Assembly (NCBI GenBank): GCA_965649765.1
Contig: OZ287757.1
Span: 27,280,001-27,344,000 of the forward strand
Length of the DNA stretch: 64,000 nucleotides
From: Bispira polyomma
Lineage: Eukaryota
Reading direction: 5' to 3'
Of the stretch, positions 1 to 50,349 are shown one piece after another; position 1 is the stretch's first letter, and every line of letters begins with the position of its first letter. A program made the translations under genes and the position numbers. The notes beneath the pieces were generated by a model that saw only the letters and a program-made list of their open reading frames with translations, did not search any database and was not told where the DNA came from.

Positions 1-212
1 GTTGTATCATTTCAGATCTAGTTAGGATAAAAATTAGCACTGATATTTAGTAATGGCCTCGAGATAATCGGTTTCAGTCACCGAAGTTAGTTAAAGTATG
101 TTTATTATTTATTGTAAGTGTAATCCAAACTGTTTAATACTTTCTGTTCTGACTACAACCTAAAGTAATTATGTTTTCGGTTGCAGATGTTGACAGTGAA
201 GAATCCAGTGCA

Positions 213-3200
213 ATGAAAATTGAAGGTATTTATTTAGTTGCAAAATCCAATATGTAGTTCTATCCACACTTGTGAGAAATTGGTGATTTTGAAACAGGAG
301 CTTCTAGGTTACCATGGCCCCTACACCACTTGATAGTTTATTTGTATCATTACAGGACCAGTTAACTGTCACTTAGGTTACTTTCGGTATGATCTGTTTA
401 CTTTTATTGAAGAAGTACCTTGTCAAATAAAGTGCTGTTTTATAATTTAATCAAAATCATAGAATATTACAATTTCTCATGGGGCCAGTTACAACAGAGA
501 AGTGCAGTTATGTTTTATACTTCATCATGGCAACGTTCTTGTGTTCAGAGCTATCAAACTCAACCAACATCCTTATTTGTCCTCAATCATCAAATCTAGT
601 AGCGTTACCTGGGGAAATCACCTCTTTGTTTCTTCAATCTCACCAAACAGGAAAATCAGCAGGTGCTCCTGTGGCTCCTGTTGAATGGAACAAACTTCCA
701 CACACTGTTAGATCACAGGATAAAATCAATGGTTTCTGGAGCCATCTGAAACCTTAACTTTTCAGACTGGCCTACCTCCTTCCTAAGTCCCCCTTCCCTT
801 GGTGGATGCTTTCTGGTAACGACCTTTTGTTTGTCTCTAAACCTTCTATTTTTGGATATCAGCGACATAAAGGATGTTCTCATCAATTTGGCGCTCTATA
901 AATGTTTCAATTATTAATATTATTATTAATAATAAAATAAAACCAACCACAATCTTAAGTTAGAAAGTAAAGTTTGAATGGTAACTACAAAATGTTTTGA
1001 TGAATGAAAATCTAAGAGCTTAATTGAAATGATACTACCTATTAGATGGATTATCATCCAAATAATAATTGTTGATCTTATAATAGAGAAAATCAAAATA
1101 CTTCGAATATCTTAATATAAAGATAATGCATGCCGCTAAACCACATTGAACTATAGAACTTGCATACCAGAAGATCTGTTAGCAACTATCAATTTTGTAC
1201 CTAAAGCTAAGGGGTAAGTAAACTCAAAAAATAACTTTATTGATAATAATAATAATAATGTAAATAAGGCAGCACGTACATAATATTTATATTTTAAAAA
1301 ATAAATAAATAAAATTGTAAATAAAATGACACAGAGCACTAAGTGGCTAATATTTTGAAAAATATAAAAATAAAATGGTATGTAATGTTATAAATTATAG
1401 TAGATCTGCTCATTAAAATGAACTCTGTATTTAAAGTTTTGTAATTCTTATTGGTAAAGGTGGAATTTGAATTTATATTGGGATATTTAACGTCCACTCT
1501 AGTACCTGTTTAGGTTATATTGGGACGGGTAGTTGGAAATGCTGGAGGAAACACTGCATACAGTTGATCAAGGTTCTGCCCTGAAACCAGCGGCCCAAGT
1601 AAGGAACTACCACCTTTCCCACAAAGGTATCAGCGGGAGTCGAACTCACACCACCCAGAGGTGAGAGACCAGTGATTGTGAAGTCCAATGCTTGCTAACC
1701 ACTAGGCCACCGCGGCCCCTGGTAAAGGTGGAAAGTCAAGTAGTAAGGTCAAAGTGGTAAGTTGGTATAATTTATTGAAGACAGTGAAACCAAAGTTTGA
1801 GGTATTTATTTTTTCCTGTACATATTAGTTTATATATTTATTTACAAGTAGGGTTAAAAGTAAGTAAAGAGTTTTAAAATACACCATAATTTAAAAAGCA
1901 CCCATTACACAGGATACATAAAACAAAAAACATAAGACTAACCAACTAGCCATGTAAACCAAAGCAAACTCCAACTAACTGAAATATTCAGACACATAAC
2001 CAATCTGAATTAATAATCAAAGAAAATAGTCCTCTATGACCATCTCTTAACACAACTAAGCATTCACAACTCAAAGACAATTGCGTCCCTAAAATCACAA
2101 TTTACATATTATATATTTGATGCACTATTTGCATTATATGTTTTTAAAAATTTTCAGAAAAAATTGGTCATGTCTTTTAAGTCCTTCACATTCTTCAGAT
2201 AATCACAAAATATATCAACGTAATATTCACCTTACACATTCCTGATCCATAAGTTGAAGTTTTGAAATATAAATACTTAAGTTTATGAATATATGTACCA
2301 TCCATTGTTATCAAATCTCCACTCTATAAGTGACCATAGCAAAGATTTGTTTATTTAAAAAATCTACCATTTCTAATGAAACCACTACTATAGTGGGGAA
2401 ACCGGGTCCTACGGCACCTAATCGCCTAGCAGTGAAGGTTCCCGGCTGCAGTATTGAATTCCCTAGTAGCCCACACCAGGGGGTAGTTACGGCGGGGGAC
2501 CAGGAACAAACGGATCCAGGTTCAAACCTGTTAGTAGTGACACTCGAGCTATCTAGTTAAGTATCTCCTCAATTGGGGGATAGACAGATTGAATAATACT
2601 ACGAATCTGCCACCAGGGATTAAGGTAGGTATAACTTTACCTTTGAACTGAACTAGCTGTGCATTGTGACAATTTCTCTATTTGAGTTACGGTAAACTGG
2701 AAAAGAGATTTTGTAAAATATTATATCTAATGCTATTCTATTATGAACATTTAAATTGTATATTTCTACAAACCATAGAATGATGTAATTGAGGATTCAA
2801 CATATTTGTCACAAATAGCGTTCTTCCACTGAGCAGATTCTCCAAGTTGAAAACAACTTACATTGAGAATAACTTAAGGAAAGCATTTATAAAATTATAT
2901 AATGTAAGACTATAAAAATAAAATAAATAACTTAGGAAATAGTTATTTAATTTTATTTAAATTCATGCAACAATTAAAACCAAAGAAAAAAATAGTCATG
3001 TGCTATTAATGTAGCACACAAAAAAATCGATTAAAATAGAAATAGAAAAAATTTACTTTATACCAACTTTCTTGAGTGGGGTTATATAAACGAACACTCT
3101 AACCAAGGATATCATACATCGTATACTACCAGAAGGAATCAAACATGTCTGCAACATTAAAAAGAAAGTTATTGTAAGTTTAAAAGAAAAAGCTTTTACA

Positions 3201-6200
3201 CAGTAGAAAAAAAACAGGATGTAATCTTTGCTCTAACATAATTCTAAAATGGGAGAAGAACCTTCAAAACAGAACTGACACACACGTTATACAGATTCCT
3301 TTGTTACAGAACAAAATATTATGTCCCGTTAGGGCCTTACAGGAACTTATTTTGGCAGGACCACTTCCTCCTGCTGCACCACTTTTTGCAGCCTGTGTAC
3401 CACCATTCCATCCAATAGTTGACACACATGTAAGGTTTTCACTCCAGAAAGTTCTTACACACTTAGGTATACCATACAGGTCACACGGCTTTCACACCTT
3501 TAGAAGGTCGGGGGCCTCCTTTGCATTCAACAAGAACGTGTCTTTGCAAAACATTATGTCTCATGGGCTTTGGAGGTCCTTGGCCGTGTGGGCTTATTTA
3601 CAGAAAACCTCACAGGCTGCTTCAATTGTCCCTCTTACTTTTGCCTCTGCCATTCCCCCTTCTTAGTTGGGCTTGGGGCTTAAAATTTTATGTTATAAAA
3701 ATTTTAACTTTATTTTACCTCTCAACATGTATATAAATACTAACTTGTAGATAATAAAATCTCAAATGAAATCTTTTATTGCTTTCAACAATTTCACCTA
3801 AACTTACAAATTAACTTACCACCAGTGGACTGTGCATAGCAAGTCACCTTTAGGCAACTGCTAGTTCAGTCCACCCTCTCTCTTATTATTATACTCTACC
3901 TTAAGACCCCCTAGCGAATGCTACAGTATTATCCACTTTTCTTTCTATCCATAGCTACTAGTGAATCACAGCACAGATCACCTGTGACCCCTAGCTTTAC
4001 TAGCTATCCTCCATATTGTATTTATTATTTCACTTGTGAACAGGACATTGTGGAAAAATTCAACTCTCCAACTCCCCTTCACCACAGCATTTATTATTTA
4101 TTTGAACTTAAGGTTTCTGCTTAGACTCAAGGCTGTTATTTAACGGGGTGAGAGAGTGGGTATGAGTTCTGGATTCCGAGCCGTGTGTTGGGAGGTCCCG
4201 GCTTCTTATTCCCTCCCCTGGGCAAACCACTGGGGTGCCAGGGTAGAATAAGGGGCTCTGAGAGCCCGGACCTGTCCCTCTGCTAGGCGATTAGGTGTCC
4301 AAGGCCCGGGGTCCTGTCCTCTAACCTGCTGTGTATCTGTTTGTGAACTTACATTTGTAGCTTTGAGGCATGACTGTAAAAATTTTCAGTTTAGGTCAGG
4401 TTGACTTGATTGGACAGGGTGACATAAGACTCACTTAGACACTAGTTGTGGACAACATACATAGGTTTACACTGGAAATTATCCCTGGTGGAATTTTCCA
4501 AATGACTGATATGACCTAATCTTAAAGTTCTAAATCACAGGGGTGTGAACCCAACATATTAGGTGTTTACATCTCAGGTGCGAGATGGATAATTCATGGC
4601 ACAAGATTGTCGTGCTTGCACGAAGGGAGTGTGTAGTAGAATAAAATCACAATATAGCATGTGTGGCTAAGCTTCTGTTAAGATATACCACTGCACGTAT
4701 GCATTACTTTTACATGTTTCTAGAATGTATTGTGTTCATAATAGTTTAGTTTATTAATGTAACGGTTAGAATTTTGGAACTTGTATATGGGAAAGTTAAA
4801 TACTGTATTGGTTCACAATTTGTGACAAGATCTGTTGTTTTATCATTTGCCAACTATGCTGCCTCATAGTATTATAGGTTATATTGTTCCTGTTGAGGGA
4901 ATTGTTATCTTCTAACATAAAGTTTGGTATGATCAAGGGGTCTGTAGTCTTTAAATTTGTTTGTTCACGACTAGTCCTATTTTGTTGGTACTCCTCTTGT
5001 CAGTGTTAGCCTGTGTGAGGCTTAAAATTTTATGTTATAAAAATTTTAACTTTATTTTACCTCTCAACATCTATATAAATACTAACTTGTAGATAATAAA
5101 ATCTTAAATGAAATATTTTATTGCCTTCAACAATTTCACCTAAACTTACAAATTAACTTACCACCAGTGGACTGACGCACAATGTACACACACAAAGGAA
5201 CGCTAACAACAAAAACAAAAATAGAAAATCAAAAGTGAAAACAATTGCTTATATATTTGAAGGTCCCTCAATAATATGCAATAAAATGTGTAAATTAAGT
5301 GCAATGTGCTAATAAGATTATACCAAAATGGTGTTTGTAAAATAACTGTTTAAAATAATATAGAGTCGTGAGCAAAAATAGGAGACTTTTTACCTCTTTT
5401 TGTAATTAACTAGCGAATGAGTTTGGTTTATTCTTTTCATCATAAACTCGGTTCATGTGTTGTAGACGCATAGGCTAGCAAATTAAGTTTGTGGCCTCAG
5501 TGGGTCGCCCTATTCTGATCTTGTTCGATTTTGGACTGACATTTCTATAACAATTTTTGTTGACCAAGACCTCAGATGTATTAAATATAGCACTTTGATT
5601 ATTGGAACTCTTTATTGTATACATAATAGACTGGTACCACAAGTAGTCACTTAAAAGTCACATGATGCCCTTTGTAAAAAGCCTTATTAGCATATTATTT
5701 CTTTGTAGAGCAAGAAGAACATTATGATTACAGAAATGAGGTAATGGTTAAACAGTTATTATATATTGTGTAATACTTTTATAGTGTAAATTCAACAAAA
5801 CATATACTGTGATTGAGATCACAACTGAAAATACTTTTTATTATCTTAATTACTTCTCATTTCAATATTTATCAAACTTCCCTAATGTTCTGTGTCATAC
5901 ATTTGCGAAAACTTTGGTACAATAATTTCATCTTTATTTTATTTTAGGCTTTATTGGAATTTAAAATATCTCCTGCAGGAGCAACTTACCACTTTCCAGA
6001 AGAAAATGTTACTGTGGTTATTTCACCAAACAGTTTATGCCATTCTGGAATTCCGTGTACAGCATCCATAACACCAATTCAAAAAGAAAAGCACATGTCT
6101 GGTGTAATGAGTAAAATCTATCAGTTCAATCCATGTGGATTAATCACACAAAACATGCTGATGTTTGTTCTTCCTCTCCTCCCAGCCCACAATTACAATT

Positions 6201-9200
6201 ACAGCAATATGACTCTCATGTACCGTGGTGAAGGGGACATTGAATTCGTCTGTGCTAAAACCATGAAGGAATATAAACCAAGATGGGTATTTCATGGTAA
6301 TGCTTGCTATTTATTTCTCAACCATTTTTGCGAAATGTATATAAGTGAGGAGGAAAATGATTCTGGAAAAAGAACAACAACGATAACCTTGCAGATTTTG
6401 TTGTTTTATAAGTACAGTGATGAAGAGTTAGAACTTAAAACTACATTTGGATGCTACAATGAAGATTCAACCTGTTCTTCTACAAATGTCACAAAGGTAA
6501 GTTTAAAATGCAGTCAAAGTTTTATTTAAATCATCTAGATATTTGAAGTAGTTTAATTGTTAGCTCTAGTGGGAACTGTGCTACTGAATTTGCTGTCTCG
6601 ATAAGTTGGCAATAGATTAACAAAATGTCTGTGACAAGGAAGAAATCTTGTGATACTAATGTTAAACTTCTATCACGCTAAAATTTATATCATGTTTTGC
6701 ATAACACCAACCCTCAATAGTACACATCCAATTAAAACCACATTTGGATGCTTCTATACTAAATCAACATGTTCTTCTACAAGAGTCAATTTATTTCAAT
6801 GATGTATACATTATAATTTATTTATTTAAAACATTTCGGTGATTTTAAGAATTTGTAAAAAAATAAAATGAGTATTTGTAGTATTTTAATGACTAGTCCT
6901 ATTGGGAAATTGGCTCAATTGGCCCTCTCGAATAGATTAACTAAAATGTTGGTGGTTTCCAAGGGAGAAATCTTGACCCAATAACTTGCTATTCCAGTTG
7001 TCATAATCCCCATATACATTTACTTATGACTTTATAAATCTCCACATGTAATTTAACTTTTTGCAGCATTACACAGCAGCAGGTTATAGCATTGGAGGTG
7101 AACGACAGGCTATTATCTTTAGAGGATCCACCTTAACTGTTGAACCACAGTTTTGTCAAAATGACTGGGAGCTAAGTCACTCTGGTGATGTAATAGAGGT
7201 GAGAAAGTTAAAAAAAATCTATAATGATATCAAAATAAAGTTTTGTATCCAGTGCAATGTATATGGAGATTACAGTCACCTTATTTTAGTTTTCCTGCAT
7301 AGACATTAGGTCTGTGCAACTTGCAAATGCTTAACTAAAGTTTATTGTTTTGCAATATGGTAGTTCAGAGTAAAAGCATTGGATAATTATTAGTAGGGTA
7401 TTGGAATTATCTATTATTATTAGTAGAACACAATAAATTGTTAGAAAACTGGGGCACATTTTTGCAATTTTGTTTTAATTACACTGCATTGTAGTCCCAT
7501 GTGGCAATGGCACCACAGAGCAAACCATAGATAGATACCCATTTGCCAGTGAACAAGTAGTTTATTAGTATTGCAATTTCAGGAGATACGTGGCACTACT
7601 TTGGTAGACATGTGTAAATTTTGCCGCATTACAGCAAATGCATGGCCAATAGCCATTTCACATACACTGCTGAAGCGTGTGGCCATGTCAAAACGAAAAA
7701 AAGATGTAGTAATAAAAATAACCCATGAGGGCCAGACAATTGTTTTAGAGTGTAAGGTGGTAAGTAATGCAATGACTTGAATATATTCAGTATGTATTTC
7801 AGAAAAAATCTGTATTTATGTGACCAGTATCTAGTATATTTATCATTTAGCTTGTGATAAGAACTCCCCCGAAAACTATGTTTAAAACTTAAGAATAAAT
7901 AATCCGCTGCCAAACAATATCTATTCTACACATATTGAGCTGCTTTTTGTACAGTTACATAACTGTCATGCCCTTTTTCGGCATTAAGTTCTTGAAGTGA
8001 ATTTTTTTTAAGTGAATTTTTTAAAACTTTGGTATTTTTGGTGAAACAATATCTACTATACACATATTTTACCGAAATGCCTGTCTCTGACTGAAGTTAT
8101 CTGATGTACATGTCTTAATTATTGATGTGGTTTTTAACAGATTACATTATTATTATGATTCCACTTTTAACACGCTTTATTGATGCTAGGCATATGCTAA
8201 AGCACAAACAGAATCAGTAATCCAATTGTAAAGTATACGGGTGTAGCAAAGTTGTAGAAAAAGATGTGGAAGCATACAGGAGGGAACTAAGGTGGGTAGC
8301 CAAGGTAAAAATATAGGTTTAGAGCTTTTTCCTAAAACCATCTACTGATCTGAGGGGACTGGGAGACTGTTCCATAACAATGAAGCTGCAATGGAAAAAG
8401 CTCTGGATCCCTCCCTCCTGATGGGTGTAACCGAAGTAACAAAGAGTCTGTTGCCTCCCTTTAGGTTACTGAAAGAGAAAAGAGGAGCAAGGTATGATGT
8501 TGTTGTTGTTGGGTGACTACAGCCTTAAAAATGGTAACATGAATTTTAAACAAAATTTGAGAGTGAATGGGCAGACAGTGTGGGTTTTTTGGTAAGTAGC
8601 GACGTCTGTGTGACCACCCAGGCAAAATATCACCTGTATAGGTAGTTTTTAATGGAATTGAGATTATTAATCTGTGACTTGTTTACTCCAAACAAAAGAA
8701 AGTTGCAGTAGTCGAGGGCATTAGCCACAGCTATAACAGTGTTCAGTGACAGGTGATTTTGGATTCTTTTGATGTCACCTATGTGATATTAGCTGAAGTG
8801 ACAGATGTTGGCAATATGAGTGTCAAGCAAAAAGGCCGAGTCAAAAGTTACACCCAGGTTTTTGGCATTTTCGGAAGGCATTATATCTTTTCTCCGAAGG
8901 GAAATAGGGAACCTTGATTTGAGGAATGCACTATATTTCTATATGTCTCCAATGAGAATGAATTCAGTTTTGTCGTTGTTTAATTTCAATTTGGAGTAGA
9001 ATTTATCCACGCCTGGACAGAGGACAGACAGTCTGCAAATAAATTAATATTTTGTTTGTGTTTTGAGGGTTGAGAGAGATAGACTTGTGGTGTCATGAGC
9101 ACACATGTGGTGTTTTATATTATCATTATTGATAAGAGGATGTGTAAAAAGGGTTAAACATAGATGCCCAAGGACAGATCTCTGGGGTACTCTGTATCGT

Positions 9201-12200
9201 AGGTTAATGGAAGATGAAAAGTGATCATCTAGTTTAAATTCTTTGTTCTCTAAGAGTAAGGTAGTATCTGAACCAATCAAGGAGACAAAGCTGAGATTTG
9301 ACACTGGTCTGAAGTTTTTTAGCTGGTTCTTATTAAGCCCTGTTTTTTTAGCATGGGAGTAACATTTGCATTTTTGAAACAGGTAGGGGAAAATATCATC
9401 CTGAGGAGAAAAATTTAATATGTTGATTGTGGGTGTGACTAGGATGTCGAGGCATTGATTTAGAATAACGGCTGGGATTAGATCAGGTTCACAAGATTTA
9501 ATAGGAGAGGATTCAAGGAGTTTTAGAATATCCTGCTTGGAAAGTCTGCGGAAATGGAACAGGCTATAAATCTTATACTCTGGAATTGGAGGGCAGAATG
9601 AGACATCATTAAAAAGCCGTAACGAATGTTGCTGATTTTATCAATAAAAAATTTGCTAAATTTATCCATGTAAAAATGTTAGACAATGGTTTATCGGGAG
9701 AACTTTCTTAGATATTCTATGGAGAATTTTATTTTTCTTTACGACCTTGCTATGCCCATGGAATTTACGATTAGATAACTAATTCTGCAGTTGTGCTTTT
9801 GAAGAGCATCAATAAAGCGCGTTAAAAAAGCACAATAATAATAATAATGAACAGTTTTAGATGTGCTTCTACAAGTAATTCTTGATTAAGTCCATATTTC
9901 AGAGTGCATCATTTAATACTCAAGCCTAAATCAATGGTGCCATGATATAAAACTGGCTCAACTGTTTTTAGCCCAAGTCAGACTTGAAATATATACATGT
10001 GGCTTTAAGTTATTCAAGTTTAGAGTGAGTTGTCTAGCCTACAAAACTCAGTTTCAGTCATTTCTTATATATGAAAGGCAATCAATAACTGTAAATAGTT
10101 AAGCTAGACTGATATCAACTATAATTTTTAAAAATACTATTCACTTGTAACAAGTCGATACATATCAGATAATATGTGATGTACTTGTACTTATAATTCT
10201 TTTAATGTTTGGTATTGTTACTTTATATGGAGCACTAAAATGACATATCCTTTTCTTACCTTCTAAAATATTCGGTTAGACATATTAATGTGTACTCAAT
10301 ATTCACACATATTATCCTTGCTTTATTACTTTTTCATTGTCACTTCATTGAAATATATGTACAATGATTTTCTGCTTCATAATAAAAATTTTCAATATGT
10401 TTGCATGAGTACTATGTTTCATGTCTCCTGTTTTTTTGTTTTAGTCAAAATTACCTCAACAGAATAGCAACAGTCAAAATGCATTTCGACAACTAATTGG
10501 CATGGAGAATGAAACCATTGAAGATGAAATTAGAGATATATTTTACATGCACATGTCAAATACCAAAATAAATGAATGTGAACCCATAATGAAAATAGAT
10601 CTCCAACCTAAGATGGATCCTAGAGGGTTCACGAAACTATTTTTTGAAATATTTATGAAAAGTTACCATGGCACACCGGATAAATTAGAGATTTTACATT
10701 CATTAATGATATATCTAAGACAGTTTCCATGTCTGCAAGACATTGAACGAGAATTAAAATGTTTAGAATGTGTAAAGAAAATCGAGAAGCAATTCCTGTA
10801 CCTTTTGAGGGAAGGATTACTGGACAGCTTTCCACAATTTTTAGAAAGCAGAGGCTTCCTTAGTAGTAAAGAATGTACCAAGTTGCTAACATATCCAGAT
10901 ACTGCCAGCAAGGTTATGTATGTGATGGAAAATATCATATTACATAACTCCAACAACTACAAGATACTTATGAAGTATTGCACAAACCAACCCAAATTGA
11001 AGAAATTTCTCCCAGAAGGTACACAGTCCATGGATGAAAATGAAATGACTGATTCTGTGAGTATATGTTCCTAGTGTACTGCTTTTATCTTATTTCCAAT
11101 ACATCTATTATTCTCTATAGAGAGCATAACAAAGGTTGATATATTATAACAAACAAATAAAGTTCCTTCGCATTAGTGCAAAGCTCGAGCATATTTCAAA
11201 GTGAACCTAGTGTGAGCTAAATATAAAGCTATAACAATTTTTAATAAGTAAAATATTGAAAAGAATCATCATTTCATATACATTGACACAAAAATAATGT
11301 TGTACTGAATATGTGAATATGCAAGTTTTTATTTTTGTAGATCAGACCAAATGACTTGCCGAAGTTGTGCAACGATTGTCTCCTGACTGTTGCTAATGAA
11401 ACCCTTGGCCTACAAAGCACAATTGATGTTTTGGCCGAAGTGGGTAATAGTTTTTGCTCCCGCTTAAATTATGACATAATTTGTGATAATGCATGGCAGG
11501 GAATTAACAGTGCAAGGAATGACGATGAGGCATTGGGATTGGTGCGTAAGGTAGTTATTTGCACATTATTATTTAACCAGTTTAAAAAAGTGGGTAAAGA
11601 TTTTGTATAACTATCTGTATTTCCTTTGACATGATCTGCGTATGGAAAATGCTTTATAACAAAATTAACAAACTTGACACTTATTCATCCATATAATTCA
11701 AAAAGTGTGGTATGAAACTATCTTATAGTCTCAAAAGTAATAGATACCTTGGCACTATATGATACTTAGTATTTATATAGATGGGCTTTATTGTCCAGCA
11801 TTATATCAAGTTTAAGTATTTTGTATCTATAAATCTTTGCTTTCAAGCAACCAGTTTAGGGGTACTTTAAGGTGTTCTCTGTAAAGGTCAGTTTCTACAT
11901 TTGTATTCAAGCTAAAATCTAAATGGTTATTGTACATATATCTTTATGTTTGGTAAAAGGATAAAACAATGATGACTCTATCTTAAGGTGACACCATAAA
12001 CTCCACTCTTAACCTACAAGGGATTTGTACCCTTGCAACACATAATTGTGCACCTCTCCTCTCGGAATCATGTTTAAGTGACAAAATCACTATTGATGGA
12101 TGTTTAATTATTCCATATTGATTAAATTTTGGATATGTTTTGAGTTTAAGCATATTAATGTTATTATAAACATTTTCTATTGTCGATATATTTTCTTTTA

Positions 12201-12400
12201 TTTGCCCACTGTAGGAACTACATAAGAGCCTAATACCAGACAAGCTCGACATAATACTGCGGGTTCTGAGATTGAAATCAATGGGTAAGAAACGCCATGC
12301 ACAAAAACTTCAGGAGATTTACCATGAGAAAATTCAACAATATTACAAAGAACAGATTTGCGAGGGAAAAAAATGTTTCAAGGGAACGGTAGAAAACTAA
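213..12400 (+). CDS. Multi-exon gene encoding a ZU5-UPA (FIIND/PIDD/UNC5-like) + CARD + death-fold protein of about 636 aa. Exons 187/213-225, 5709-5740, 5948-6496, 7067-7198, 7583-7759, 10445-11056, 11341-11550, 12215-12400
   Basis: Every intron is GT..AG and phases match (1,0,0,0,0,0,0). There is no internal stop, and the frame ends at TAA 12398-12400. The start is ATG 213 (MKIE), or exon 187-225 continues an upstream exon outside the window. Confidence 0.8.
440..945 (+). mobile_element. L2/CR1-group LINE 3' fragment
   Basis: APVEWNKLPHTVRSQDKINGFWSHLKP*LF matches the L2 ORF2 C-terminal 'AP..WN.LP..R......F...LK..LF' motif. It is followed by an ATT/AAT tail. Confidence 0.7.
1466..1719 (-). 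mobile_element. tRNA-derived SINE (family A) with 14-bp TSD
   Basis: Minus strand starts GGGGCCGCGGTGGCCTAGTGG (A box) and has GAGTTCGACTCC (B box). TSD tggtaaaggtggaa at 1452-1465 and 1720-1733. Confidence 0.9.
2393..2660 (-). mobile_element. Non-coding terminal-repeat remnant of a DIRS/Ngaro-like element
   Basis: GC-rich island. 2415-2432 is the exact reverse complement of 4280-4297, which lies in the 3' region of the neighbouring YR element. Confidence 0.5.
3235..5174 (+). mobile_element. DIRS/Ngaro-like retrotransposon 3' remnant: YR C-terminus (to 3666) plus terminal repeats
   Basis: LCPVRAL...HGFHTFRRSGA...HGLWRSLAVWAYL carries the H-x-x-R and catalytic Tyr of tyrosine recombinases. 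A 156-bp direct repeat lies at 3677-3832 and 5019-5174. Confidence 0.85.
5948..6496 (+). CDS. Exon encoding the ZU5 domain and the start of the UPA-like domain
   Basis: ttttag|GCT...AAG|gtaagt, 183 codons. ZU5-like pattern ISPAGATY..VTVVISPNSL..SKIYQFNPCG..FVLP..LMY..YLFLNHFC. Confidence 0.8.
6430..7000 (+). repeat. Diverged tandem duplication (about 300 bp) of an exon end plus intron start
   Basis: taaaactacatttggatgc..tcaacctgttcttctacaa (about 6435-6486) recurs at about 6733-6782. The downstream intron motif aatagattaac..gaaatcttg also recurs. Confidence 0.65.
7067..7198 (+). CDS. Exon, UPA-like beta region
   Basis: ttgcag|CAT...GAG|gtgaga, 44 codons, phase 0/0. Confidence 0.75.
7583..7759 (+). 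CDS. Exon, end of the UPA-like region
   Basis: tttcag|GAG...GTG|gtaagt, 59 codons, phase 0/0. Confidence 0.75.
8146..9720 (-). mobile_element. Decayed L2-clade LINE (RT region to 3' tail) inside an intron
   Basis: Minus-strand fragments VPQRSVLG, LKLNNDKTEFILIG, AKNLGVTFDS, LDYCNFL and GSRAFSIAASLLWNSLP. ATT tail at 8146. Confidence 0.85.
10445..11056 (+). CDS. Exon encoding a helical death-fold-like segment followed by a CARD
   Basis: ttttag|TCA...TCT|gtgagt, 204 codons. KKIEKQFLYLLREGLLDSFPQFLESRGFLSSKECTKLLTYPDTASKVMYVMENIILHNSNNYKILMKYC..QPKL fits the CARD helical pattern. Confidence 0.75.
11341..11550 (+). CDS. Exon, first part of the C-terminal death-domain-like region
   Basis: ttgtag|ATC...AAG|gtagtt, 70 codons, phase 0/0. 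Confidence 0.7.
12215..12400 (+). CDS. Terminal coding exon (ELHKSLIPDKLDIILRVLR...GTVEN*)
   Basis: Pyrimidine tract + ctgtag|GAA, open for 61 codons to TAA. AATAAA at about 12727. Confidence 0.7.
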   Translation, partial: ELHKSLIPDKLDIILRVLRLKSMGKKRHAQKLQEIYHEKIQQYYKEQICEGKKCFKGTVEN

Positions 12401-13374
12401 CAGATGATTCTAAAAGCCCATCAAGCTCAAACTCTTATCTGTTTCAAAAGAAGATCTTATAGATATATTTGTATGGCAAAATGGATTTGTGATGAGAAAT
12501 TCAATTGTTTGTATCAATTTAAATTATCAGAAATGTATATACTATATACAGAAACATGATACATGTAATGATACTATCATTTTATTCGTTTCCACTTGTC
12601 ATGGGAAAACTAAAGGCACTTATTTGGATAAATATCTCGATTTGAAAATATGTCAGTCCATGTATATAATCTTTACATGTCAGGGAGCTGTAAATGGAAG
12701 CTTCTATTCAATAGTCAAAGAGCAAAAATAAAATGATCAAACAAAGGATTTAACTATGTAACTCTGTGGGTAAATGGAATGGATCAGTAGGCTATTATTA
12801 GTTGATCTCCAACAAACGTCAAACCTTTGTGGTTCTATGACCATTATATATGATGTGGTTATAACATAAATGTACTAAATATGTTCAATTTAAGATACAC
12901 TTTTTTAGATGTCTTATACATAGTTAATGATCCATAAAGTGTAACAAGAAGTAATGTGAGTCAGACATTTATAACTTTGCAATATAATTAAAACAAAATG
13001 AAATTTGTACATCAAATTATATGAAACATACTAGGACAAATACGTCGAAGTAAATTGGCAAATAAATACCTGAACTAGTATCATTATTATTGATTTTTTG
13101 CAGGCTGTATATAGCATAGGAAGTCAGATGTACTGCATAATTGGAATTATTTTCTGGCTTTTTACAATTGCTTTCATTGATTTATTTGTGAATATTTACA
13201 TAACTGATACCTAACGACAGGATCTGAGTTGTTCAATTCTGGGGGCTTTACCAACAAAATGAACTGACAGACAACTAACAAGTGTTTCTATTTACCCAAC
13301 ACTTTCCCAACTAAGGCTCAACCGATGCCTAACATGCATGTTAGTGTAACAAGAGCTTCGACTTACAACCCCTG

Positions 13375-14221: not shown

Positions 14222-15800
14222 CAGTGAGCGAAACTGCCGCGTACCCGGTGCCCCGGGGCCACAAACTATCTCGTCGGGCCATTTACTTTTGAAACTTACA
14301 GGTCCGTGGGCCAGTAGATATACAAAATCGATAGATATATTGTCTTTTAATTCTAATCATTTAATATTTCAAGATAAGAAATCGCTACATTTGCAAACAA
14401 TATATATCCTTTCCTTCAACCGCCATTAGACGTTTGTGTAAACAGACTGCGCTGATGTCTTCCTGTGGTCTGTGTGGGACATACTAAAGCTGTTTCAAGA
14501 GTACTGGTTGGTTTAAAACTTCAAATATTTGAAGATACCGGGACTTTCCGCCAATAAAAATGCTTCTAACATATTCCTGTGTGTAAATATTTTCCTTTGC
14601 TAGCGTTCTACATCCCCATTTTTTAGGGTTTAGGAAGAAAAATGGACAAATTTTGAATATAAGACCTAAAGAAACCCCTCCTGCTAAGAAAAAAAACCAC
14701 TAAAGAAGTCTCTGAAGTAGTTAAAAATTATGAGGCTCAGAAACGTATCAGATGTTACCAACAGTTCTGGGAGAAGCAGTACCCTTGGTTGTTATACAAT
14801 GCATCAATCAGTAAGATGTATTGTAAAATTTGCAGATCAGTCTATGGGCCTCTGGCCCTTAAAAGTAAAAATAAGGGATTGTCTTCTAATGAGTTTACTA
14901 AGTATGCCATTAGAGAAATAATGCTAGAAACCCATCAAGTGAAATGCCTGTTGACCATTGCTTATCTAGTCTGCACAGGGCTGATTATGATAGACTTTGC
15001 TTACTTTTCAGGAATGCACATTTAATAGCTATGCATTCCAAGTCTTTTAAGGGTTTTCAATGGATGTGTGCCCTTGACAAAAAAAAGAATTACAGATTGG
15101 AAGCACTTACGAAATGATACTCAATGTAAATAATTCATGAGAGCCATTGCAGTAAACGAATGCAACAAAATTCGAGATTATTTGAGTGGAGCCAAGTTTA
15201 TAACTTTGTTAAGTGATGGATCTGTTGATGTATCCACCATTGAGAATGAAACTATCTATATCAGGTGTTGCATTGAAGGGGAAGTTCAGACTTTTTTATT
15301 CAAATGGCTGCTATACCACGTGCCAATGCCCGAGGAATATTTAATGCGTTAAGAGGGGCTCTTAAAACTGTAGACTCTAGTAAATTTGATGCCGGTTTGC
15401 CAAAGCTTGAAGAAAAATTAGTGTGCTTTACAGGTGATGGGGTCAGTGTGAACAGTGGTCATCAGAATGGTGTCATAGCTAAACTTCAAGAAGAATTGTC
15501 AAAAGAAATCATTTTTATTTATTGCTTGAATCACCGTCTTGAGGTTGCCTTCAAGAAATCAATGAAAGGAAATTAACTGTATGAAAAAGTTGACACTCTC
15601 CTCAGTGAGCTCTTTAAATTTTACCATCCCAGTTCTCTCCAGACTGAAAATCAAAAAACTACCTATGAAGCCTGTAATGTCAGTGTGCAATTGCCTCACA
15701 GAGTAGGGGGGACAAGGTGGGTCAGTTACTTGTATGGAGCCTTAGCACAAGTATGGAAGGGCTACAAATTGTTTGTTCAGCATTTTGACCAGGTAACTGA
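14222..15800 (+). mobile_element. hAT-family (ZNF862-like) transposase pseudogene with CAG-starting terminus
   Basis: CAGTGAGCGAAA terminus. Fragments QYPWLLY..MYCKICR, LLSDGSVDVSTIENE, FTGDGVSVNSG, IYCLNHRLE and GGTRWV are spread over several frames with stops. Confidence 0.85.
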
Positions 15801-19799: not shown

Positions 19800-21670
19800 C
19801 TTGAGAACATAACTATATGAATTCTCAAATACCAATTTCTTCATAGCTCAATGTCGATTGCTGGAAACACTTCATACATGATTATTGGGACAAGCAAATT
19901 GTTGACTTGCTTACATATGGCTTTCCTCTCGATGTTCATACCTCTTGTCAGCTGCATAGTATGGAAGAAAATCATAAATCTGCTAATGAATTTAGCTCCC
20001 ATGTGGATGCATATATGACTAGGGTTTATGACTACGGACAAAGTAAATTTCACTACTCGTCGTACGATAGTGGTATGATAGTGGACCTAAGTTGATCACG
20101 GGGCTTCTCGGTCAACAATTACCCAACTGTAAAAAATTGTTGCTAATGTTAAAAGCTTTAGGCCCTGGGGCCCTACTATAAAATTGATATCAGTAGGATC
20201 TCTAGGTATGTTCTCATTGACCCTGGGGACCTACATTTACTGGTTCTAAAACACAATGATACATATCTTCTAGACCGTCATCTTCACAAATCAATGATGT
20301 GATGTCCTCATGGGGACACAAACCTTCATGTATTAAAAGACAGTATCAGTCACTACTTGGTTCTCTGTCACCAAGTGTGTCCAGCCTGCAAGGTATTTCT
20401 TGAATCAAATGTTAAGTTTACTTAGGGACAACCATAGTAAAACTTCTATATGTCTTACTCCTGAATTTTTGAAATATTTGAATTGGTTCAATACTTTTCT
20501 TTCATCATATAATGGGGTTAGATTCTATGATAACAAATATGTCAGTGCCACATTGGAGTTAGATGCCTATACAAAGGCGTTTTCGGGGATATGACACAAT
20601 TCACCTAGAAATCCTTAATATTGTGGTGGCCCTTAATGAGCTCACTTGGCTGACAAACGTATACTCATAAAATGTGATAACAAAGCGGTAGTTGAGGCCC
20701 ACAATTCTGGTAAGGCCAGGGATGCTATGTTGGCTACATGCACAAAAAATATTTGGTTATTCTCAGGCATGTTCAATGTAGAACTGGTTTTAAACCATGT
20801 ATATGAAAATTTTACCAAGTGGCTGATCTGTTGTCCAGATTGACTTTTTACAAGCAACCTTCGGAAAACTTGAAAGTGCATAAACCACAGCCTGAATAAG
20901 TATAACATATAGTACTATGTATATATTTTGTATTCCGGTTGATCTGTGTGGGGCAGCCCAGTTGGCATCCTGTGCCACCACCAGACTGCTGTCTGCCTTT
21001 AGACCAACGACGAGGTAGGCTTACTCCAGAATGCTCAAATAATTTCTGGCTTTTCTGGTGGCAGCTGGGCTGCAGCTATGCAGGTCTCTGTATTAGTATT
21101 GCTTTCATTTATGGAGTATCTAGTTGTAAATGGTAAAAATGTCAATAATATTGCCAATTTTGTTTTTTCTTCCAAGAGCTTCCTATATAATACATGTACT
21201 TTCTACACAGGTTTTTCAGGACCTTAGAATGCAGCATTTTATGACATCACTACGATAAACAGATTGTTTTGTCTTAGAAATGTATTTGATGAAATAGTGT
21301 TACTACAGAAAGTTCATGCTGCTTCATTTAGTGCATTCTTTTGATGTGTCCAGATAGCTGGCTCGGCAGGGGGGGATATTATATTTGTACCCCCAGGGAC
21401 CACTGTCTTGGTTAAATAGTCTAAGACCATTTAAACCCGGGGTGACTTAAAACCCATTGCGTTTCCTGCTCTGGCAGACTCACCTCTCTGTCCAGTACGG
21501 GCACTAAAATGTATATTGGGCCTTGCTTTATTTCAACCTAATGATCCCTTGTTTCGAGTTTGTAGAGCAAAGTTTTCTACTGATTCTACGGCAAGAAAAC
21601 ACCTTAAGAAAGTGCTACACTTTATCGGAGCCACCAATTTGAAATATACATTTCACAGTTTTTAAGTCAT
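19800..21670 (+). mobile_element. Heavily decayed DIRS/Ngaro-like retrotransposon (RT-RNaseH-YR fragments)
   Basis: DYWDKQIVDLLTYGFPLD..EENHKSA, MIVDLS, IDPGDL, CDNKAVV..SGKARD, AFRPTT, LCPVRAL and YTFHSF, with many stops and deletions. Confidence 0.85.
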
Positions 21671-36984: not shown

Positions 36985-39900
36985 GATATCATTTTGCAAC
37001 TTAAGGGTTGATCCTGTAAAGTTTGGTTTATTCTTGGACAATAAGTTCTACCAGGAATTGGCTCTAGGCCCCACCAACCCCAGGAGAAGAAAGCTTAAAA
37101 ACACATGAATTGAGCTTGCTATTTTTATTATACGTAAAATTGAGGTTATTGCTACTACTACAATATATTTACACATCCATTAAGTATACATGTTAAGTTT
37201 GTTATACACATTGAATTAGTACATTATGTATACTGATAAACCTTTAATTAGTACATTATTGATTCTGGCAACCTTAACTCAACACTTAGTCTTTCAAGTT
37301 AAGGTTGGTTTGACAGTAAACTATGATCACCTTAACATCACTTTAAGGGGATCTTAATGTTCCCTTGATTTAAGACATAATGATACAATTCACTTTAAGG
37401 TAACATTAACATGTGTATAATTTGGAAATATTAAGTAATAAGTAAAATTCATGAACAGTAATAGCATAACATAACAGTAAAATTTCCCTCAAGCCCAACA
37501 GTAGTGTAGTGCTGCATTTATGTAGTTATTTATCTAATATGGATTGAAACGAACGAGCTACTTGCTCCCCCAAGTTGTGGTCTGCGTGGATGTACCTCCA
37601 CACACAATTCGACGTCCAGGTGCCATGATGTTCGATCTGTTGTATTACTTTATTTGCATTATAAGCAAATGTAGCACCTGAACGTCGGAAGGTGTGGAAC
37701 GTAAAGTAATGCGGGTCCAGACCCAATTGTACATTGAGTCTAGACAAAGTTTTCCTGATACGGGTATCCGTAAGCACTTGCCAACCTGCAGCAGTTCTGC
37801 ACTGGAATAAGGGCTCATGTTGCTGAGGGTTATACAACTGAAACACGTCACGCAAGGCTCTGTATGGACAGAGGTGTGATTCATCTAGCTTGGGGAGACT
37901 AATGACATTGATATTGTTTATGTCTTGCATTGTCTTAGTCCATTAGACCTTGACCAGAGACTTGGTGAAGAAGACATCGCCCCCTGCCAAGTGTCCAGTG
38001 CTGTCAGGTATGCAAAGAATGTGGGGCAAGATTTGAGGCTCTAAAAAAAAAAAAAAATGCTGTTAGAAACACAGCCTTGAAAACCTTGTCATGATGCATT
38101 TTTTCACATAATAATATCAAGCTTTTTAGTGTTACCACATCCATGATGTTTCTACGCGTTATTGATATGGGTCTATTAATTCTAACTGCTTTTACAAAGT
38201 ACTTGATTTTGGGTTGCTCAAGGCACTGATAGGGGAGATCATAAATGATGCATTTTGCCTTTATGGCTGATATATAATTGCTAATCATGTTGACTGAGAC
38301 TCCACTTACCACCAAACATTCCATAAAGGCCAACACTACCTCAGTATTGATATCTGCTAATTTAACTTTGGCATGTAAACAAAATGACACAAAGTTCCTG
38401 AATAACATGCTGTAACATCTTTGGGTCTTTGGTCGAAATGGCTGTTGCCATCTAGCACTTGCCTAACCCAACAGCCTTGCCACCACACTGTGACCTACAA
38501 CAAAGTATAGTATCATTAGTTATCAGTATGTGCTGTAGATTATAAGTCATTATCTAATTCTAACATTTCAATACACACAGGAAGCCATACTGGCTGTTGC
38601 ACATACAATAATAATTCACTGTTATTTTCCACTGTATTCTGCCATCTAGACAGGAGATCGGCAGTTCTATTCAGTTTGCCCAGGACATGGATGTACTGCA
38701 GATCTACATCTGTCAGTGCAGCCAGATACCACATATTCCTGGCACAGGCCTCCAAGAAAGGGTACCTGGCCCGACCTGACTGCAGCACTTTCACTACAGC
38801 ATCATTGTCACATTTAATTAGCACTCGTCTACCACTCCAATGTTTGTAAACAAAAGGGACTGCAACTGCCTAATAGTACAAGTTTTTTGGTTATGCCATT
38901 CCTTGACAACTTCATTAATTTTGTGCAACTTATCTTGGAGAATCGAGACAGTTCCAGTTTCTGTATTAATGAGGACTCCCAAACACACAGCCTGCGTGCT
39001 AGGGGGTATCAATTTCTTTGCACTAATCGTGAGACCCAAATTTTCCAACAATTGGTATAGGCATTCACAGGACTTCTTTGCTACAGGGGGCCTGCCGTAC
39101 TCAATATAATCGTCAATGTCGTCCACGAAACTGTAACCACAGCAACGCATGACATAACGAACACCATCACTTAATCGCTGAAAAATTTGACTTCCGTGTC
39201 TACTCCCAAAGGGAAGACAAGTGTCAACATATGTGCCTTTCCATGACAAGCCCAGTAAGTCGTAGTCACATGGGTCGATCTTTACATGGCGAAATGCCCT
39301 ACTGACATCTATTTTTTAAACATGCGAGCCACGGCCTAATTTTCTAAGCTCATCTGTGATGTGATCTACTGTGGGAAAAGTCAAGCAAAAGTCAGTGCCT
39401 AGATAAGTACCCTGGCTTGTCTCTAGTCATGAAGGGGGAGTAATGCCCCCCCCCCCTCCTCCTTTATTGGATGTTTGTCAAAAAGGCCTATAATTGCCCT
39501 ATGTTTTATTTCTTCATTCAAATAGGCTTCTATGTCTTCAGGGATATTAACAGCTGACTTGTGGTTTTCCTCCTCCCACACCAAATCAGTGTCCAATGGA
39601 AAACCATATTCAATGAACTCTAGTATTTCCTGGTCCCAGTAGTATTTTAATATCAGTTTCCAATGGTCTACCTTTAATTGGGAGTTGACAGGTATTCGTG
39701 CCTGTTGGAATTTGAATTTGCCAGTTTTGGTGACCTCAAAGTGTGCCTTAATCGGGTCAGTCATTACTGGGGCCTGAGTTTGAACAATGCCATGGTGAAG
39801 TGGGTCTGATAATAGAACAAAGCCATAATTAAAGTCAGTTTGTTCTTGCCACCGTATGTGTGCTAATACCCTGTCCACCGAACCTGTCACATCTCTATGT

Positions 39901-42425
39901 TTGTATAATATTGAATGGACAAATTTATCACCCTCACCATTTTTTTTATGTCAAACAACTGGGTTTGTTTCCCCTTAGCCTTTTGTTTCAATTCACTGCA
40001 TGTGGTACTACTACTAACTTCATTTGCAGATGTATTGTTACTGGCTAATTGAATTCCATCCCCACAATGTCCAATCAAGTCTTGACACTTCTTTTGTTCC
40101 CCACCCGTGACTCCCCCACAACAAGGGAGGGTGTTATGCCCCTACTTGTTATGGTTGGGTCACACTTCACGGTTTGTGTACACATTTTCATTGTCTGCTT
40201 TACATTGTTGACAATTTGGGGACACTTGCTTTGTTTAAACACTCTCTCAGTGACACGTCTGGTTTTGTTGTTTGTACTAGCTCCCTGAGCATTAACCCAA
40301 ATTTCTTTCATATCAATTCTAGAGGGGCAGTGCACTTACCTAATCCAATTTTCCTTTCTACCTGCTAACAAAGCCTCAATGTTTTTTCTGGCAGTTTTTG
40401 AATTATAAAAACTTCTGGTTCTATAACACTCGTGTACATGAGCCTGATTTTTAACATTGGACCTGTCACCGAGAACCGTGTTTTTAAAACTCTTTGCTAT
40501 TCTACCTTTTGTAAAACACATATTACCAACAGAGTGATTAAACCTCTGAACACATTTTCTATCAACAACATTACATAACACTTGGTTAATCTTGTCTGGA
40601 GTATATACCTCTGGTTCCTTATACACAATGCTGCCCACTTTTCTTACTAAAGGTGAGCAGCTGGCTGCTCGTTTTTTGAATGAAAATTTTTCTTCCCAAA
40701 CATACAGTCCTTTTCCGGGTGACCACTCACCCTTCCCCTCTCCAGACAAGAAGAACATATTTGTTTGTGAATTTTGCCACCGTTCTCGTGGTCCTTACTC
40801 TGGCTACAAGCCCCAGTTTGATACGCTTTACAATACCAATGTTTAACACCCCGATTAACATCTGAATTTTTTCCCCAGTTATTTTTACTTGGTACTACAT
40901 GCTTTTGTGCATGAGCAGCACGTCGAATCCTATCTATTCTATGACTTTCTTCCCATTTCAGAGCACTCCTTTCCATCTCACAAAGCAGCACAGCATGTGC
41001 TACTTTAGCTGTCTGCCATGTGGCATCCTCCATCAAATCTGACATGTATAGTAACATTTTCTCTTTAATATCGGAGTCTTGCTCCTCAACAATATTCTTG
41101 GTAAAACCCTGACTCACTGAGTGAGTGACAACTGATCATAGGAAATGCGTTGCCTAGTAGTGCCACCTAATATTGTTTCTTGGGGCCAGGAGACTTTGCT
41201 TTTAACTATTACCTCAATATTACCCCCCTTTTTGATTTAATTTTGTTTGCCCCAACATTACCTTTCTGGCTCGTGAACTCAGCCTCTAAAGCACGAACAC
41301 GAGCATCCACCTGCTTTTGCAGCTCATTTGAACTTCTCAACACAGATAATTTGGGGACAATTTCCTCCTCAGAGGAAGACTCTGAAGAATCTACTACTTT
41401 GTCAACAGTACATTTTTTACTTTTACTGGTTTTGTTATTTAAGTAGGCACTACTTAACTTAGGATTGTTCTGTGAGGACGATTCTGCTGCTCCTGTTGAT
41501 TGACCAATTGCCACCTTGTCCTCCACCAGGTCCTGCCGTTCATTCACCTTCCGCAGCTGTTTCAGGATCAGGCATTGCACATCTTCTTCATCAGATGAAG
41601 ATCCAGATTCCATTGCTGTTGACATCCGGGTGTCTTTGCTCTTCTTGCTCTCCGCCCTTGTGCTCCTCGTAGGGGACTTTTCCTTCTGTGGTTTCAAGAC
41701 ACCAGCAGTGCAGTTCCTTCCCGTAGGGGGGTAGTCCTCAAAAAAACACAATTCAATTATTCACATCTGACTTGTTCATTAAGTCAGTTCAAACTGAGAA
41801 AGTATGGGGGGTTTCTTGTAAACAAGCTAGGCTTAGCCAATGACATACGTTGTGTATCTTATTGCCGAGGTACTAGATAGGGATTCCAGCTGACATCACA
41901 AATAAGCAATTAGCCTGGTATCCTACTAATTTTTAATGGCGTTAAAGCCTGACCCCTGTGATGCCTTGACACCACAGGCGAATAGCAGATCACCTTAAAA
42001 CCTTACGATTTTTACGTTTATTTCTGCATCTTTCCCAAATCTGAAGCCAGCTTGGGTTTTCAGACTATTCATAACCATCTCAATTACCTTGTTCCCCCTA
42101 TAAACAGGGATAATCTCAGTCCTTCCAGTTCCTTTGTAACTAGCTTAGGCATTGACTTGAACTTAACCATAGGTAGGATAAGAATTACTACAGATACGAT
42201 AAACCAGATTCATTTATTCAAGTTGCATTCAACTTGCATCCAACTTCCAAAACTATTCTTGGTCGTCCGCTTTTTATTCACAAATGTGAACGACCTGCAT
42301 CGGCATTGTTTTATTAATAGGTTGTTAGCAATCTCTTTTAGATCATCCTAGGACCAAGTGTTTACTTAAGGCATGAGACAAAATTTTGGTGCTATATGAT
42401 GCAAAGAAGTATTCGCTACTCCAAT
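36985..42425 (-). mobile_element. Near full-length DIRS/Ngaro-like YR retrotransposon (gag about 41750-40647, RT/RNaseH about 39890-38540, YR about 38494-37526), pseudogenised
   Basis: Gag with WQTAKVAHA..IDRIRR and a C/H finger; YGFPLD, LPFGSRHGS, IDDYI, CDN; YR HTFRRSGA..HGTWTSNCVWRY. Boundaries come from the empty paralogous site at about 23100-23120. Confidence 0.92.
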
Positions 42426-48305: not shown

Positions 48306-50349
48306 ATTAGTAGTCTTTCTGGTATTTCTTACTAAATTATGGGAGAAATCGTCCAGAGGTAGCTGTAAAATCACCCAGGGATCTGGAAGGTGTAAAATCA
48401 CCCAGGAACCTGAGAACTGACTCCGCGATACAAGATGAGGTGGACAGACGGCTCAGGCATTACCAAGATATGTCCAAGCTCAAGTCTGGTCCCTATAGGC
48501 TGGGAGATCAACGGGTTAAGGTGTCGGTCGCTTGGCCACATGAACATTGCATGTTGTTAGATAATCTTAAGATGCCTACATACGAGGAACTCTCGATATA
48601 TCAATGGGTGCAAGGGTTTTCTAGGTGTGTAATTCAAGAACCAGACGAGTCGGTAAGGATGAACATGCTAAGATACCAATACAATTTAATGCAGGACGCA
48701 GTCGACCTCTCATGGGCTACTGCTAAGCGAGCCCATGCTTCTATCCTATCAGAAATCAAGAGGGGTATGGTAACCTGGGAGGATCAAAACGAGATAGATC
48801 GCATCAGGCAAAGGTTTACTCAGAGAACTCTCAAGGCTACAGGGGGAAACGCTGCACAGGGAAGTAGGAACTATTTCAACAAAAAGGAACAGTCTGGTAA
48901 GGTAAATGTGTGCTCAAAATTTGCCAAAGACGCTTGTAAGTTTGAAATTGATCATTATGAAGGTGGCCGTTTACAGAAACATTCCTGTGGATATTGCTTT
49001 AAGGTGGTTCATAAGAACTATGAGCATTCAGAAGCAAAATGCAATAGGAAAATGAAGGAACCCATGCAGTCCACAGAGACTGATCAGAAGGTGTAATGTA
49101 GGTGCTGGCTCCTCCCCATACGTGCAACTGATATCCCACGCTGATAAACACAAATTTAATTCCATAAATTATTGTGACACAAAACGCCTCTGGCATAGTC
49201 GTTTTTGGTACAACCGACATTTAGGCCAATGTACATTTCAATGGTGTAGCAGGGACCCGATTAACCGGCCTGCAGGCGAGTGCTTAAGTATGGGGAAAAA
49301 CAGCTTTAAGGAAGCTCACAGTGGGCGACAAGTAATAAGGGCAGTGGAAGTTGACCCACTGCATAAGGTTTTAGGCGACGACAGCGTCTCTAGTATTAAA
49401 AACAGTCTTTTAAGTAGTACAGATTTAAGTAATAGGACCAGCAGTACGTGTAGTGGTGAAATATGATTTTCCTGTAATACTTCATATGTGACAACATGGA
49501 CCGATGAGGTCGTTCAACAAAGCTTAATAATTGTTGACATAAGTACTAGCAAAGTTAGCACAGAAAGTACTCTTTATAGTGAAACGCTTTCTTACATATA
49601 CAATCAGTCGGGTTATGACTTCCAGGTATAGTAGTGATGACACATGCCAACACGATTTTAACATTACCACAGACATATTACAAAGCCAATTTGGCCTGGG
49701 TGTTAAATATATTAGAAGTCCTGTAGGGGCTAGAGTTACACAACTCACTAGGGCGTCCCCCATTATGGGTGAATGTGTAGACGACAGCCTAAGGAAAACA
49801 ATAGTAGAATGGACTAGGGGGTTTATACCTAGGTGTCCCACACATTATGTGACAACAAAAAAAGAACTTCCAATTGAATTGTACTGATATGGTTGATTGG
49901 GTAACACAGACCCAAGCTTTGTGTAGGGGAAAGCAGTGTCCTATTTATGGGGGGAGGCGCGAATACCCGTCCCCTCTCAACTTAACATCAGGGCATGGAG
50001 GACCTATTTACAAGGTTATGATTTTAGTATAGTCTGCGAATACCTGGAGTTCGGCTTCCCATTGTCACTAGATTATGGCCAATTTCAATATAATACCTCA
50101 GTAGAAAACCATGCCTCTGCTAATAATTACCCTGAAGACGTGCAGAAATATTTTGACACTGAAATTCAACACAATGCTGTGTTAGGGCCTTTAGCTAAAC
50201 CACCTTTTGAAAAATTGCACATGTCACCCCTCATGTCGCGTTCTAAACCGAATGGTAGTAGGAGAATAATAGTGGACCTCTCATGGCCAAAAGGTAATAG
50301 TGTTAACAGCTATATTCCCAAAAATTAGTTTGATAATATTGAATTTCAA

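Follow-up and report, generated by a model that had tools for sequence, protein, structure and literature searches.

A 64,000-nucleotide stretch of the Bispira polyomma genome (the window; GenBank assembly GCA_965649765.1, contig OZ287757.1, forward-strand positions 27,280,001 to 27,344,000) carries near its start, at positions 213-12400, a gene whose predicted product joins a ZU5 domain and a UPA-like β domain to a tail of helical domains that includes a CARD. By its sequence, the locus is a real gene and a member of a multi-copy family. An original prediction, made from the DNA letters without database searches, had called it a CARD8/PIDD-like ZU5-UPA protein with a CARD and probably two more death folds. 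The ZU5-(UPA)-death fold-CARD layout holds up; of the two further death folds, one is borne out by structure prediction, while the other, C-terminal one is unproven and gives way to a cysteine- and histidine-bearing module.

Computed splicing joins eight GT-AG exons (Table 1) in phase into 636 amino acids from the ATG at 213, with one stop codon, at the end; the eight phase-compatible exons and the intact frame of about 636 residues that had been proposed were re-derived in this way. An alternative donor at 7756, in exon 5, also preserves the frame, and a candidate exon at about 2780-2900 was dropped, having neither an in-frame acceptor nor paralog support. Database searches and structure predictions were run exon by exon, joined models serving only for frame checks and locus mapping. 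When exons 5-8 are compared with the nearest paralog, 188 substitutions have produced no stop codon (7.6 expected, P about 4e-4) and no frameshift is seen, where the intron rate predicts about 17, so the intact frame is not due to chance.

The six core exons (3-8) recur, with order and frame kept, in paralogs and in a second assembly. Across the 1.04 Gb genome searched, in which the window is C10:27280001-27344000 and labels such as C5, C6 and C10 denote contigs, at least seven loci contain all six exons, the window locus included, and partial or broken copies lie on C6, C7, C11 and C13. An HMMER search of 1.8 billion representatives returned only 12 close matches, each a single-exon gene call; two, from long contigs in the ENA assembly ERZ22147071, belong to loci that hold all six core exons in order, and saturated synonymous divergence (dS) indicates that these two complete loci come from a different species. 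No annotated full-length relative was found in that search or in word searches, which were uninformative apart from one that returned a single genomic exon, and a scan of JGI metagenomes gave nothing informative. A search for orthologs and paralog expansions had been proposed earlier as a check on the gene; paralogs, and related loci in another species, are in evidence. The family is lineage-restricted and multi-copy, and its broken, truncated and CARD-deleted copies form a birth-and-death pattern.

The ZU5 domain that had been proposed is well founded, although Pfam gave no match over its cut-off on the window exons and none to FIIND, UPA or SH3. Against the ZU5 clusters of the ESM Atlas, exon 3 has a feature score of 0.95 and the ten best named matches all agree; in addition, distant matches of the family profile (P0014 and P0016) exceed the Pfam ZU5 cut-off. 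The UPA-like region comprises about 150 amino acids (the end of exon 3 and exons 4-5) and is conserved in all family loci. It is β-patterned and lies in the right position, as the original prediction had it, but finds no Pfam match, and its identification as a UPA domain is drawn from position and strand pattern. That strand pattern follows the one of the UPA domain of UNC5b, a likeness that no tool confirmed. At the boundary of the two domains, a His-Phe-Cys motif is invariant in all eight aligned family copies from two genomes, in codons that carry synonymous changes, and HF[C/S] continues in more distant ZU5 matches. Among distant ZU5 proteins from marine assemblies (P0014-P0018), His-Phe-Cys is likewise found, with one His-Phe-Ser, so the Cys-type motif is wider than the window-gene family. 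The equivalent sites are HF/S in PIDD and SF/S in CARD8 (PMC3210808, PMC9162469), and the chemistry of autoproteolysis can employ Ser, Thr or Cys as the nucleophile (PMC3210808). His-Phe-Cys is therefore a candidate self-cleavage site.

Exon 6 is all-helical, and its predicted structure contains two death folds. The second is modelled as a death fold of six helices whose closest resemblance is to CARDs, in agreement with the CARD claimed originally. The first corresponds to what had been described as a helical segment of about 90 residues after the UPA-like domain; helical it is, but it is itself a death-fold-like domain, DED/DD-like, with five modelled helices and, as regards the E/D-RxDL charge triad, no RxDL motif. 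In a Foldseek search no match reached E ≤ 0.001, though death folds head the list, and PDB sequence searches were uninformative. Divergence is uneven along the protein. Deep family pairs have ratios of nonsynonymous to synonymous divergence (dN/dS) of about 0.1-0.35, and exon 3, with values of 0.2-0.6, is by this measure under purifying selection. In exon 6, the 67 amino-acid changes from the nearest paralog equal the neutral expectation of 67, and dN is 0.19 versus 0.08 in the ZU5 exon (P 3e-5): the death-fold sequence changes at the neutral rate even though its reading frame is strictly maintained. An immune protein under relaxed or diversifying selection would be expected to behave in this way. 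The dN/dS comparison proposed at the outset thus establishes constraint on ZU5, while positive selection on exon 6 is suggested only (dN versus dS, P 0.26).

Exons 7 and 8 encode what we call module X, a helical unit of about 115-125 amino acids with conserved Cys and His residues: CxxC near its start, a further Cys, and a terminal His..YH..HxxCxxC, the last part of which is degenerate or partly lost in the window copy. The original prediction had placed here a death-domain-like segment of about 95 residues; no tool assigned a fold to the module. It has no Pfam match, a PDB sequence search was blank, local hhalign comparison revealed no similarity to the two exon-6 folds, and exon 7 folded alone, as a half-domain, had a pLDDT (predicted local distance difference test score) of 59 and no fold match, an Atlas structure search also being blank. 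The hydrophobic pattern of its last helices resembles that of Death domain helices 5-6, and the balance tips towards module X being a death-fold variant, perhaps zinc-clasped. A Bcl-2-like module was also considered on account of a BH3-like LxxxG pattern, and was judged less likely. Exon 7 has 67 matches genome-wide, mostly with no ZU5 exon nearby, and exons 7 and 8 are paired at about 50 loci, compared with about nine ZU5 exons of the window-gene family; on these counts module X is a promiscuous domain. Of its copies, several sit close to the end of a contig and several have a Death domain after them. Unnamed as it is, the domain deserves separate study.

Four Pfam Death matches lie less than 10 kb 3' of an exon-8 copy and in its orientation, where about 0.03 would be expected by chance. 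In the C8 paralog, a good phase-1 donor at the end of exon 8 leads to an in-frame 159-nucleotide linker exon and then to a terminal exon matching Pfam Death (E 3.8e-9); the C5 paralog has the same linker exon, with a Death match 5.7 kb on, and both ERZ22147071 loci have a good donor at the exon-8 site. The window gene carries at 12375 a degenerate donor, GTTTCA, where C8 and C5 have GTATGA, and its frame ends at 12400. A downstream Death domain exon was sought and rejected, none being present within 51 kb, and the copies C10b and C14 likewise end after module X. On these gene models, the family's true Death domain sits one linker exon past module X and is missing from the window copy. C8 in its turn has lost most of its CARD through an in-frame deletion, so that the family tail is, as read from the loci, modular.

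The 5' end differs from what was first proposed. Exon 187-225 has an AG acceptor at 185-186 and a GT donor and reads open in frame 5' of the ATG, so it looks internal, and ATG 213 was rejected as a certain start. Since paralogs have unrelated, low-complexity exons rich in P, S, T, E and K (50-240 amino acids) before ZU5, what had been described as a short acidic N-terminus probably represents just the last part of a disordered, variable stretch of greater length. An upstream exon at C10:27272831-27272907, 7.1 kb before the window, has its own in-frame ATG and is phase-compatible with exon 187-225. The 20 kb upstream hold a DIRS-type element and repeats, with no NACHT- or LRR-sized exon, no transmembrane (TM) exon and no long non-transposon open reading frame. 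The possibility that the gene is the 3' end of an NLR was rejected for want of a NACHT-sized open frame in those 20 kb, and the same stretch gives no sign of the ankyrin or NLR gene of which it might have been the end. Most simply, the product would be a cytosolic protein whose disordered N-terminus is variable and ranges from short to long.

Table 1. Features of the window gene (window coordinates) and paralogous loci.
Feature	Position	Strand	Description
Exon 1	187-225	+	39 nucleotides, phase-1/phase-1, acidic; internal type; contains ATG 213
Exon 2	5709-5740	+	32-nucleotide linker, phase 1 to 0; kept with splice sites in nearest paralog
Exon 3	5948-6496	+	ZU5 domain and first strands of UPA-like domain
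His-Phe-Cys	6323-6331	+	Residues 141-143, ZU5/UPA boundary; candidate autoproteolysis site, Cys nucleophile
Exon 4	7067-7198	+	Middle of UPA-like β domain; kept in all family loci
Exon 5	7583-7759	+	End of UPA-like domain; conserved in all family loci
Exon 6	10445-11056	+	Death fold 1 and CARD
Death fold 1	10508-10774	+	DED/DD-like part of exon 6; five helices in the model, RxDL motif absent
CARD	10760-11023	+	Part of exon 6; a single continuous helix links it to death fold 1
Exon 7	11341-11550	+	First half of module X; conserved CxxC plus one more Cys
Exon 8	12215-12400	+	Second half of module X and stop
Probable 3' untranslated region	12401-13370	+	Putative; 81% identity to equivalent region of nearest paralog
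Paralog loci with exons 3-8	C10:32.36, C10:32.55, C10:56.04, C5:73.96, C8:4.50, C14:27.62 Mb		

Several observations concern the surroundings and the other copies. Exon 187-225 has a tandem-duplicated copy 5.4 kb upstream, usable as a 45-nucleotide in-frame exon, and lies within a locally duplicated tandem block of about 4 kb (L001:3178-6790 against L001:7376 to window position 1547). Farther along, 5' exons of a neighbouring gene (60774-60868 and 61157-61274, and also 61958-62030) encode a short ectodomain that is rich in Ser and Thr and bears an N-glycosylation sequon; behind it come a TM helix and basic residues of stop-transfer type. The first coding exon of this neighbour is the one with a copy 7.1 kb before the window. 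Just past the window, C10:27348537 and C10:27409956 match a broad ZU5 profile, and the neighbours fit a cluster of TM-ZU5 (UNC5CL-like) genes. Fragments of DIRS-like retroelements with tyrosine recombinase frames lie at about 3200-3670, 19800-21650, 37500-41750 and 48400-52500, and positions 14600-15800, right after the gene, have a degenerate DNA-transposon-like reading that by eye we take to be of hAT/zinc-finger type. Among the paralogs, C10:32.36-32.38 Mb (+) and 32.535-32.553 Mb (-) form an inverted pair with 99.99% identity over 16.7 kb, which reflects either segmental duplication in the very recent past or a piece duplicated in the assembly. The ZU5 exon stands three times in tandem at C14:27612809-27620454; of these the third is intact, and the first two have internal deletions or a broken frame. 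Degenerate ZU5-exon remnants at C11:971820-973012, C13:1590632-1591483 and C13:1607974-1608828 are followed by exon 7 after about 0.2-0.5 kb, which leaves no room for UPA and death-fold exons, so these are either a shorter ZU5-module X layout or deleted pseudogenes.

By the features compared, the window gene falls outside CARD8/FIIND, PIDD1 and MACC1/SH3BP4, and probably outside UNC5/UNC5CL. With CARD8 and the FIIND-CARD part of NLRP1 it shares ZU5, followed by a probable UPA, with an x-Phe-nucleophile boundary motif, a CARD and, in its paralogs, the disordered N-terminus known from CARD8 (PMC8679799). No NACHT or LRR of the NLRP1 kind was seen within 20 kb upstream. Members of the CARD8/FIIND family are also marked by autoproteolysis, restraint by DPP8/9 and activation through degradation of the N-terminus. 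CARD8 has SF/S rather than HF/C and a single C-terminal CARD directly after UPA, whereas here Pfam FIIND does not match, a DED/DD-like fold precedes the CARD, module X follows it, and the gene belongs to a multi-copy invertebrate family with a Death domain added in some copies. PIDD1 is alike in the HF-nucleophile motif in ZU5, in the death-fold output after UPA and in the true Death domain of paralogs C8 and C5; it differs in having two ZU5 domains and LRRs, against one ZU5 exon at the window locus and no LRR in the 20 kb upstream, and the family places two or three helical domains between UPA and a Death domain that the window copy lacks. UNC5/UNC5CL, ankyrin and DTHD1 also follow ZU5-UPA with one or more death folds, and the TM-ZU5 neighbour shares the upstream exon; unlike UNC5 and ankyrin, the gene showed no TM, Ig/TSP or ankyrin repeats as far as 20 kb upstream, and its tail has several folds including a CARD. 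MACC1 and SH3BP4 combine a disordered N-terminus and ZU5 with a pair of death folds that overlap in part, and MACC1 sets a precedent for two death folds after ZU5 (PMC11585957). The SH3 domain that lies between UPA and the Death domain pair in that group is absent here, and the present family has a DED/DD-like plus CARD tandem instead of two Death domains, the HF/C motif and many copies. Our literature search retrieved no account in which ZU5-UPA is combined with both a DED/DD-like fold and a CARD (with or without a Death domain), nor any of an HFC-type ZU5 family.

The family layout, then, runs from a variable low-complexity N-terminus through ZU5 (HF/C), UPA, a DED/DD-like fold, CARD and module X to an optional linker and Death domain. 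The reading to which we lean, with modest confidence, is a CARD8-like one of self-cleavage, autoinhibition by ZU5, release of a UPA-death-fold fragment on loss of the N-terminus, and complex assembly, after the functional-degradation model of CARD8 and NLRP1 (PMC8679799). An N-to-S acyl shift would cut the Phe/Cys bond, leaving the halves associated and the UPA-death-fold fragment held inactive by ZU5. A pathogen or stress would then cleave, ubiquitinate or unfold the N-terminus and send the N-terminal half to the proteasome, and the freed UPA would oligomerise and seed death-fold filaments that recruit CARD- and DED/DD-bearing caspases or adaptors. Output would differ by copy, the window copy ending after module X, C8 losing most of the CARD, and C8 and C5 gaining a Death domain. 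We infer cleavage, N-terminal sensing, partners and an immune role by analogy, and likewise the bridging of several caspase classes that the original prediction had envisaged. A fuller version seems unlikely, though it is worth stating: a tripwire family with a Cys nucleophile for self-cleavage and fast-changing, disordered N-termini that sense pathogen proteases, whose UPA fragment would bear up to four death folds (DED-like, CARD, zinc-clasped variant and Death domain), so that inflammasome-, DISC- and PIDDosome-type complexes could all be seeded by one sensor, and paralogs would tune output by gain and loss of modules.

Three other explanations need to be weighed against the CARD8-like reading. 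The protein might be a non-cleaving scaffold or adaptor of the UNC5, ankyrin or MACC1 kind, in which ZU5-UPA binds partners, the death folds only scaffold or inhibit, as decoys or in a cFLIP-like role, and His-Phe-Cys is a structural relic. MACC1 and SH3BP4, which share a disordered N-terminus, ZU5 and two Death domains, act in endocytosis and signalling (PMC11585957), the motif is HFS or HLD in some family relatives, and decoys would be in keeping with the loss of the Death domain from the window copy and of C8's CARD. Yet His, Phe and the nucleophile are jointly invariant in intact copies from two genomes, whereas in UNC5b the key Phe is replaced by Leu (PMC3210808), and birth-and-death evolution in many copies is unlike the single-copy MACC1 or UNC5; we regard a scaffold as doubtful. 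Alternatively, the exons might make up just the 3' portion of a larger membrane receptor gene of UNC5CL-like TM-ZU5-UPA-death fold design, with its TM exon more than 20 kb upstream. The exon at C10:27272831-27272907 is a 78-87% copy of the one that precedes the TM exon in two neighbouring genes, the broader ZU5 profile matches those TM neighbours, and paralog linker exons also start with acceptors. The neighbour's TM exon itself, however, has no copy near the window gene or elsewhere except in the second neighbour, none of 13 loci has a TM-like exon upstream within the stretches read, and the copied exon, with its own ATG, joins exon 187-225 in phase without a TM segment, which makes a receptor improbable.

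The possibility that the window copy is a decaying paralog under relaxed selection, its Death domain lost, in a family that is otherwise functional, appears more remote still. Exons 5-8 have diverged from the nearest paralog as introns have (0.145-0.186 versus 0.153-0.188), the donor that would lead to the Death domain exon has degenerated, and part of the C-terminal HxxCxxC is gone; but stops and frameshifts are lacking where several of each would be expected, purifying selection is indicated for the ZU5 exon, splice sites are retained, and ending after module X is shared with C10b and C14.

How functional-degradation sensing of the CARD8/NLRP1 type arose is a question raised in a review of NLRP1 (PMC8679799), and the family bears on it and on whether invertebrates use such sensing. 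The novelty of the present layout is tempered by the precedent of MACC1 and by the death-fold shuffling common in marine invertebrates, in which fusions of TRADD-N to FIIND and to UPA-ZU5 are known (PMC8195603). Nevertheless, the family provides intact genes in which an invertebrate has the layout of CARD8, with Cys naturally standing for Ser at the catalytic position and with a modular tail of different death folds, and by analogy with CARD8 it may represent an unrecognised immune tripwire of invertebrates.
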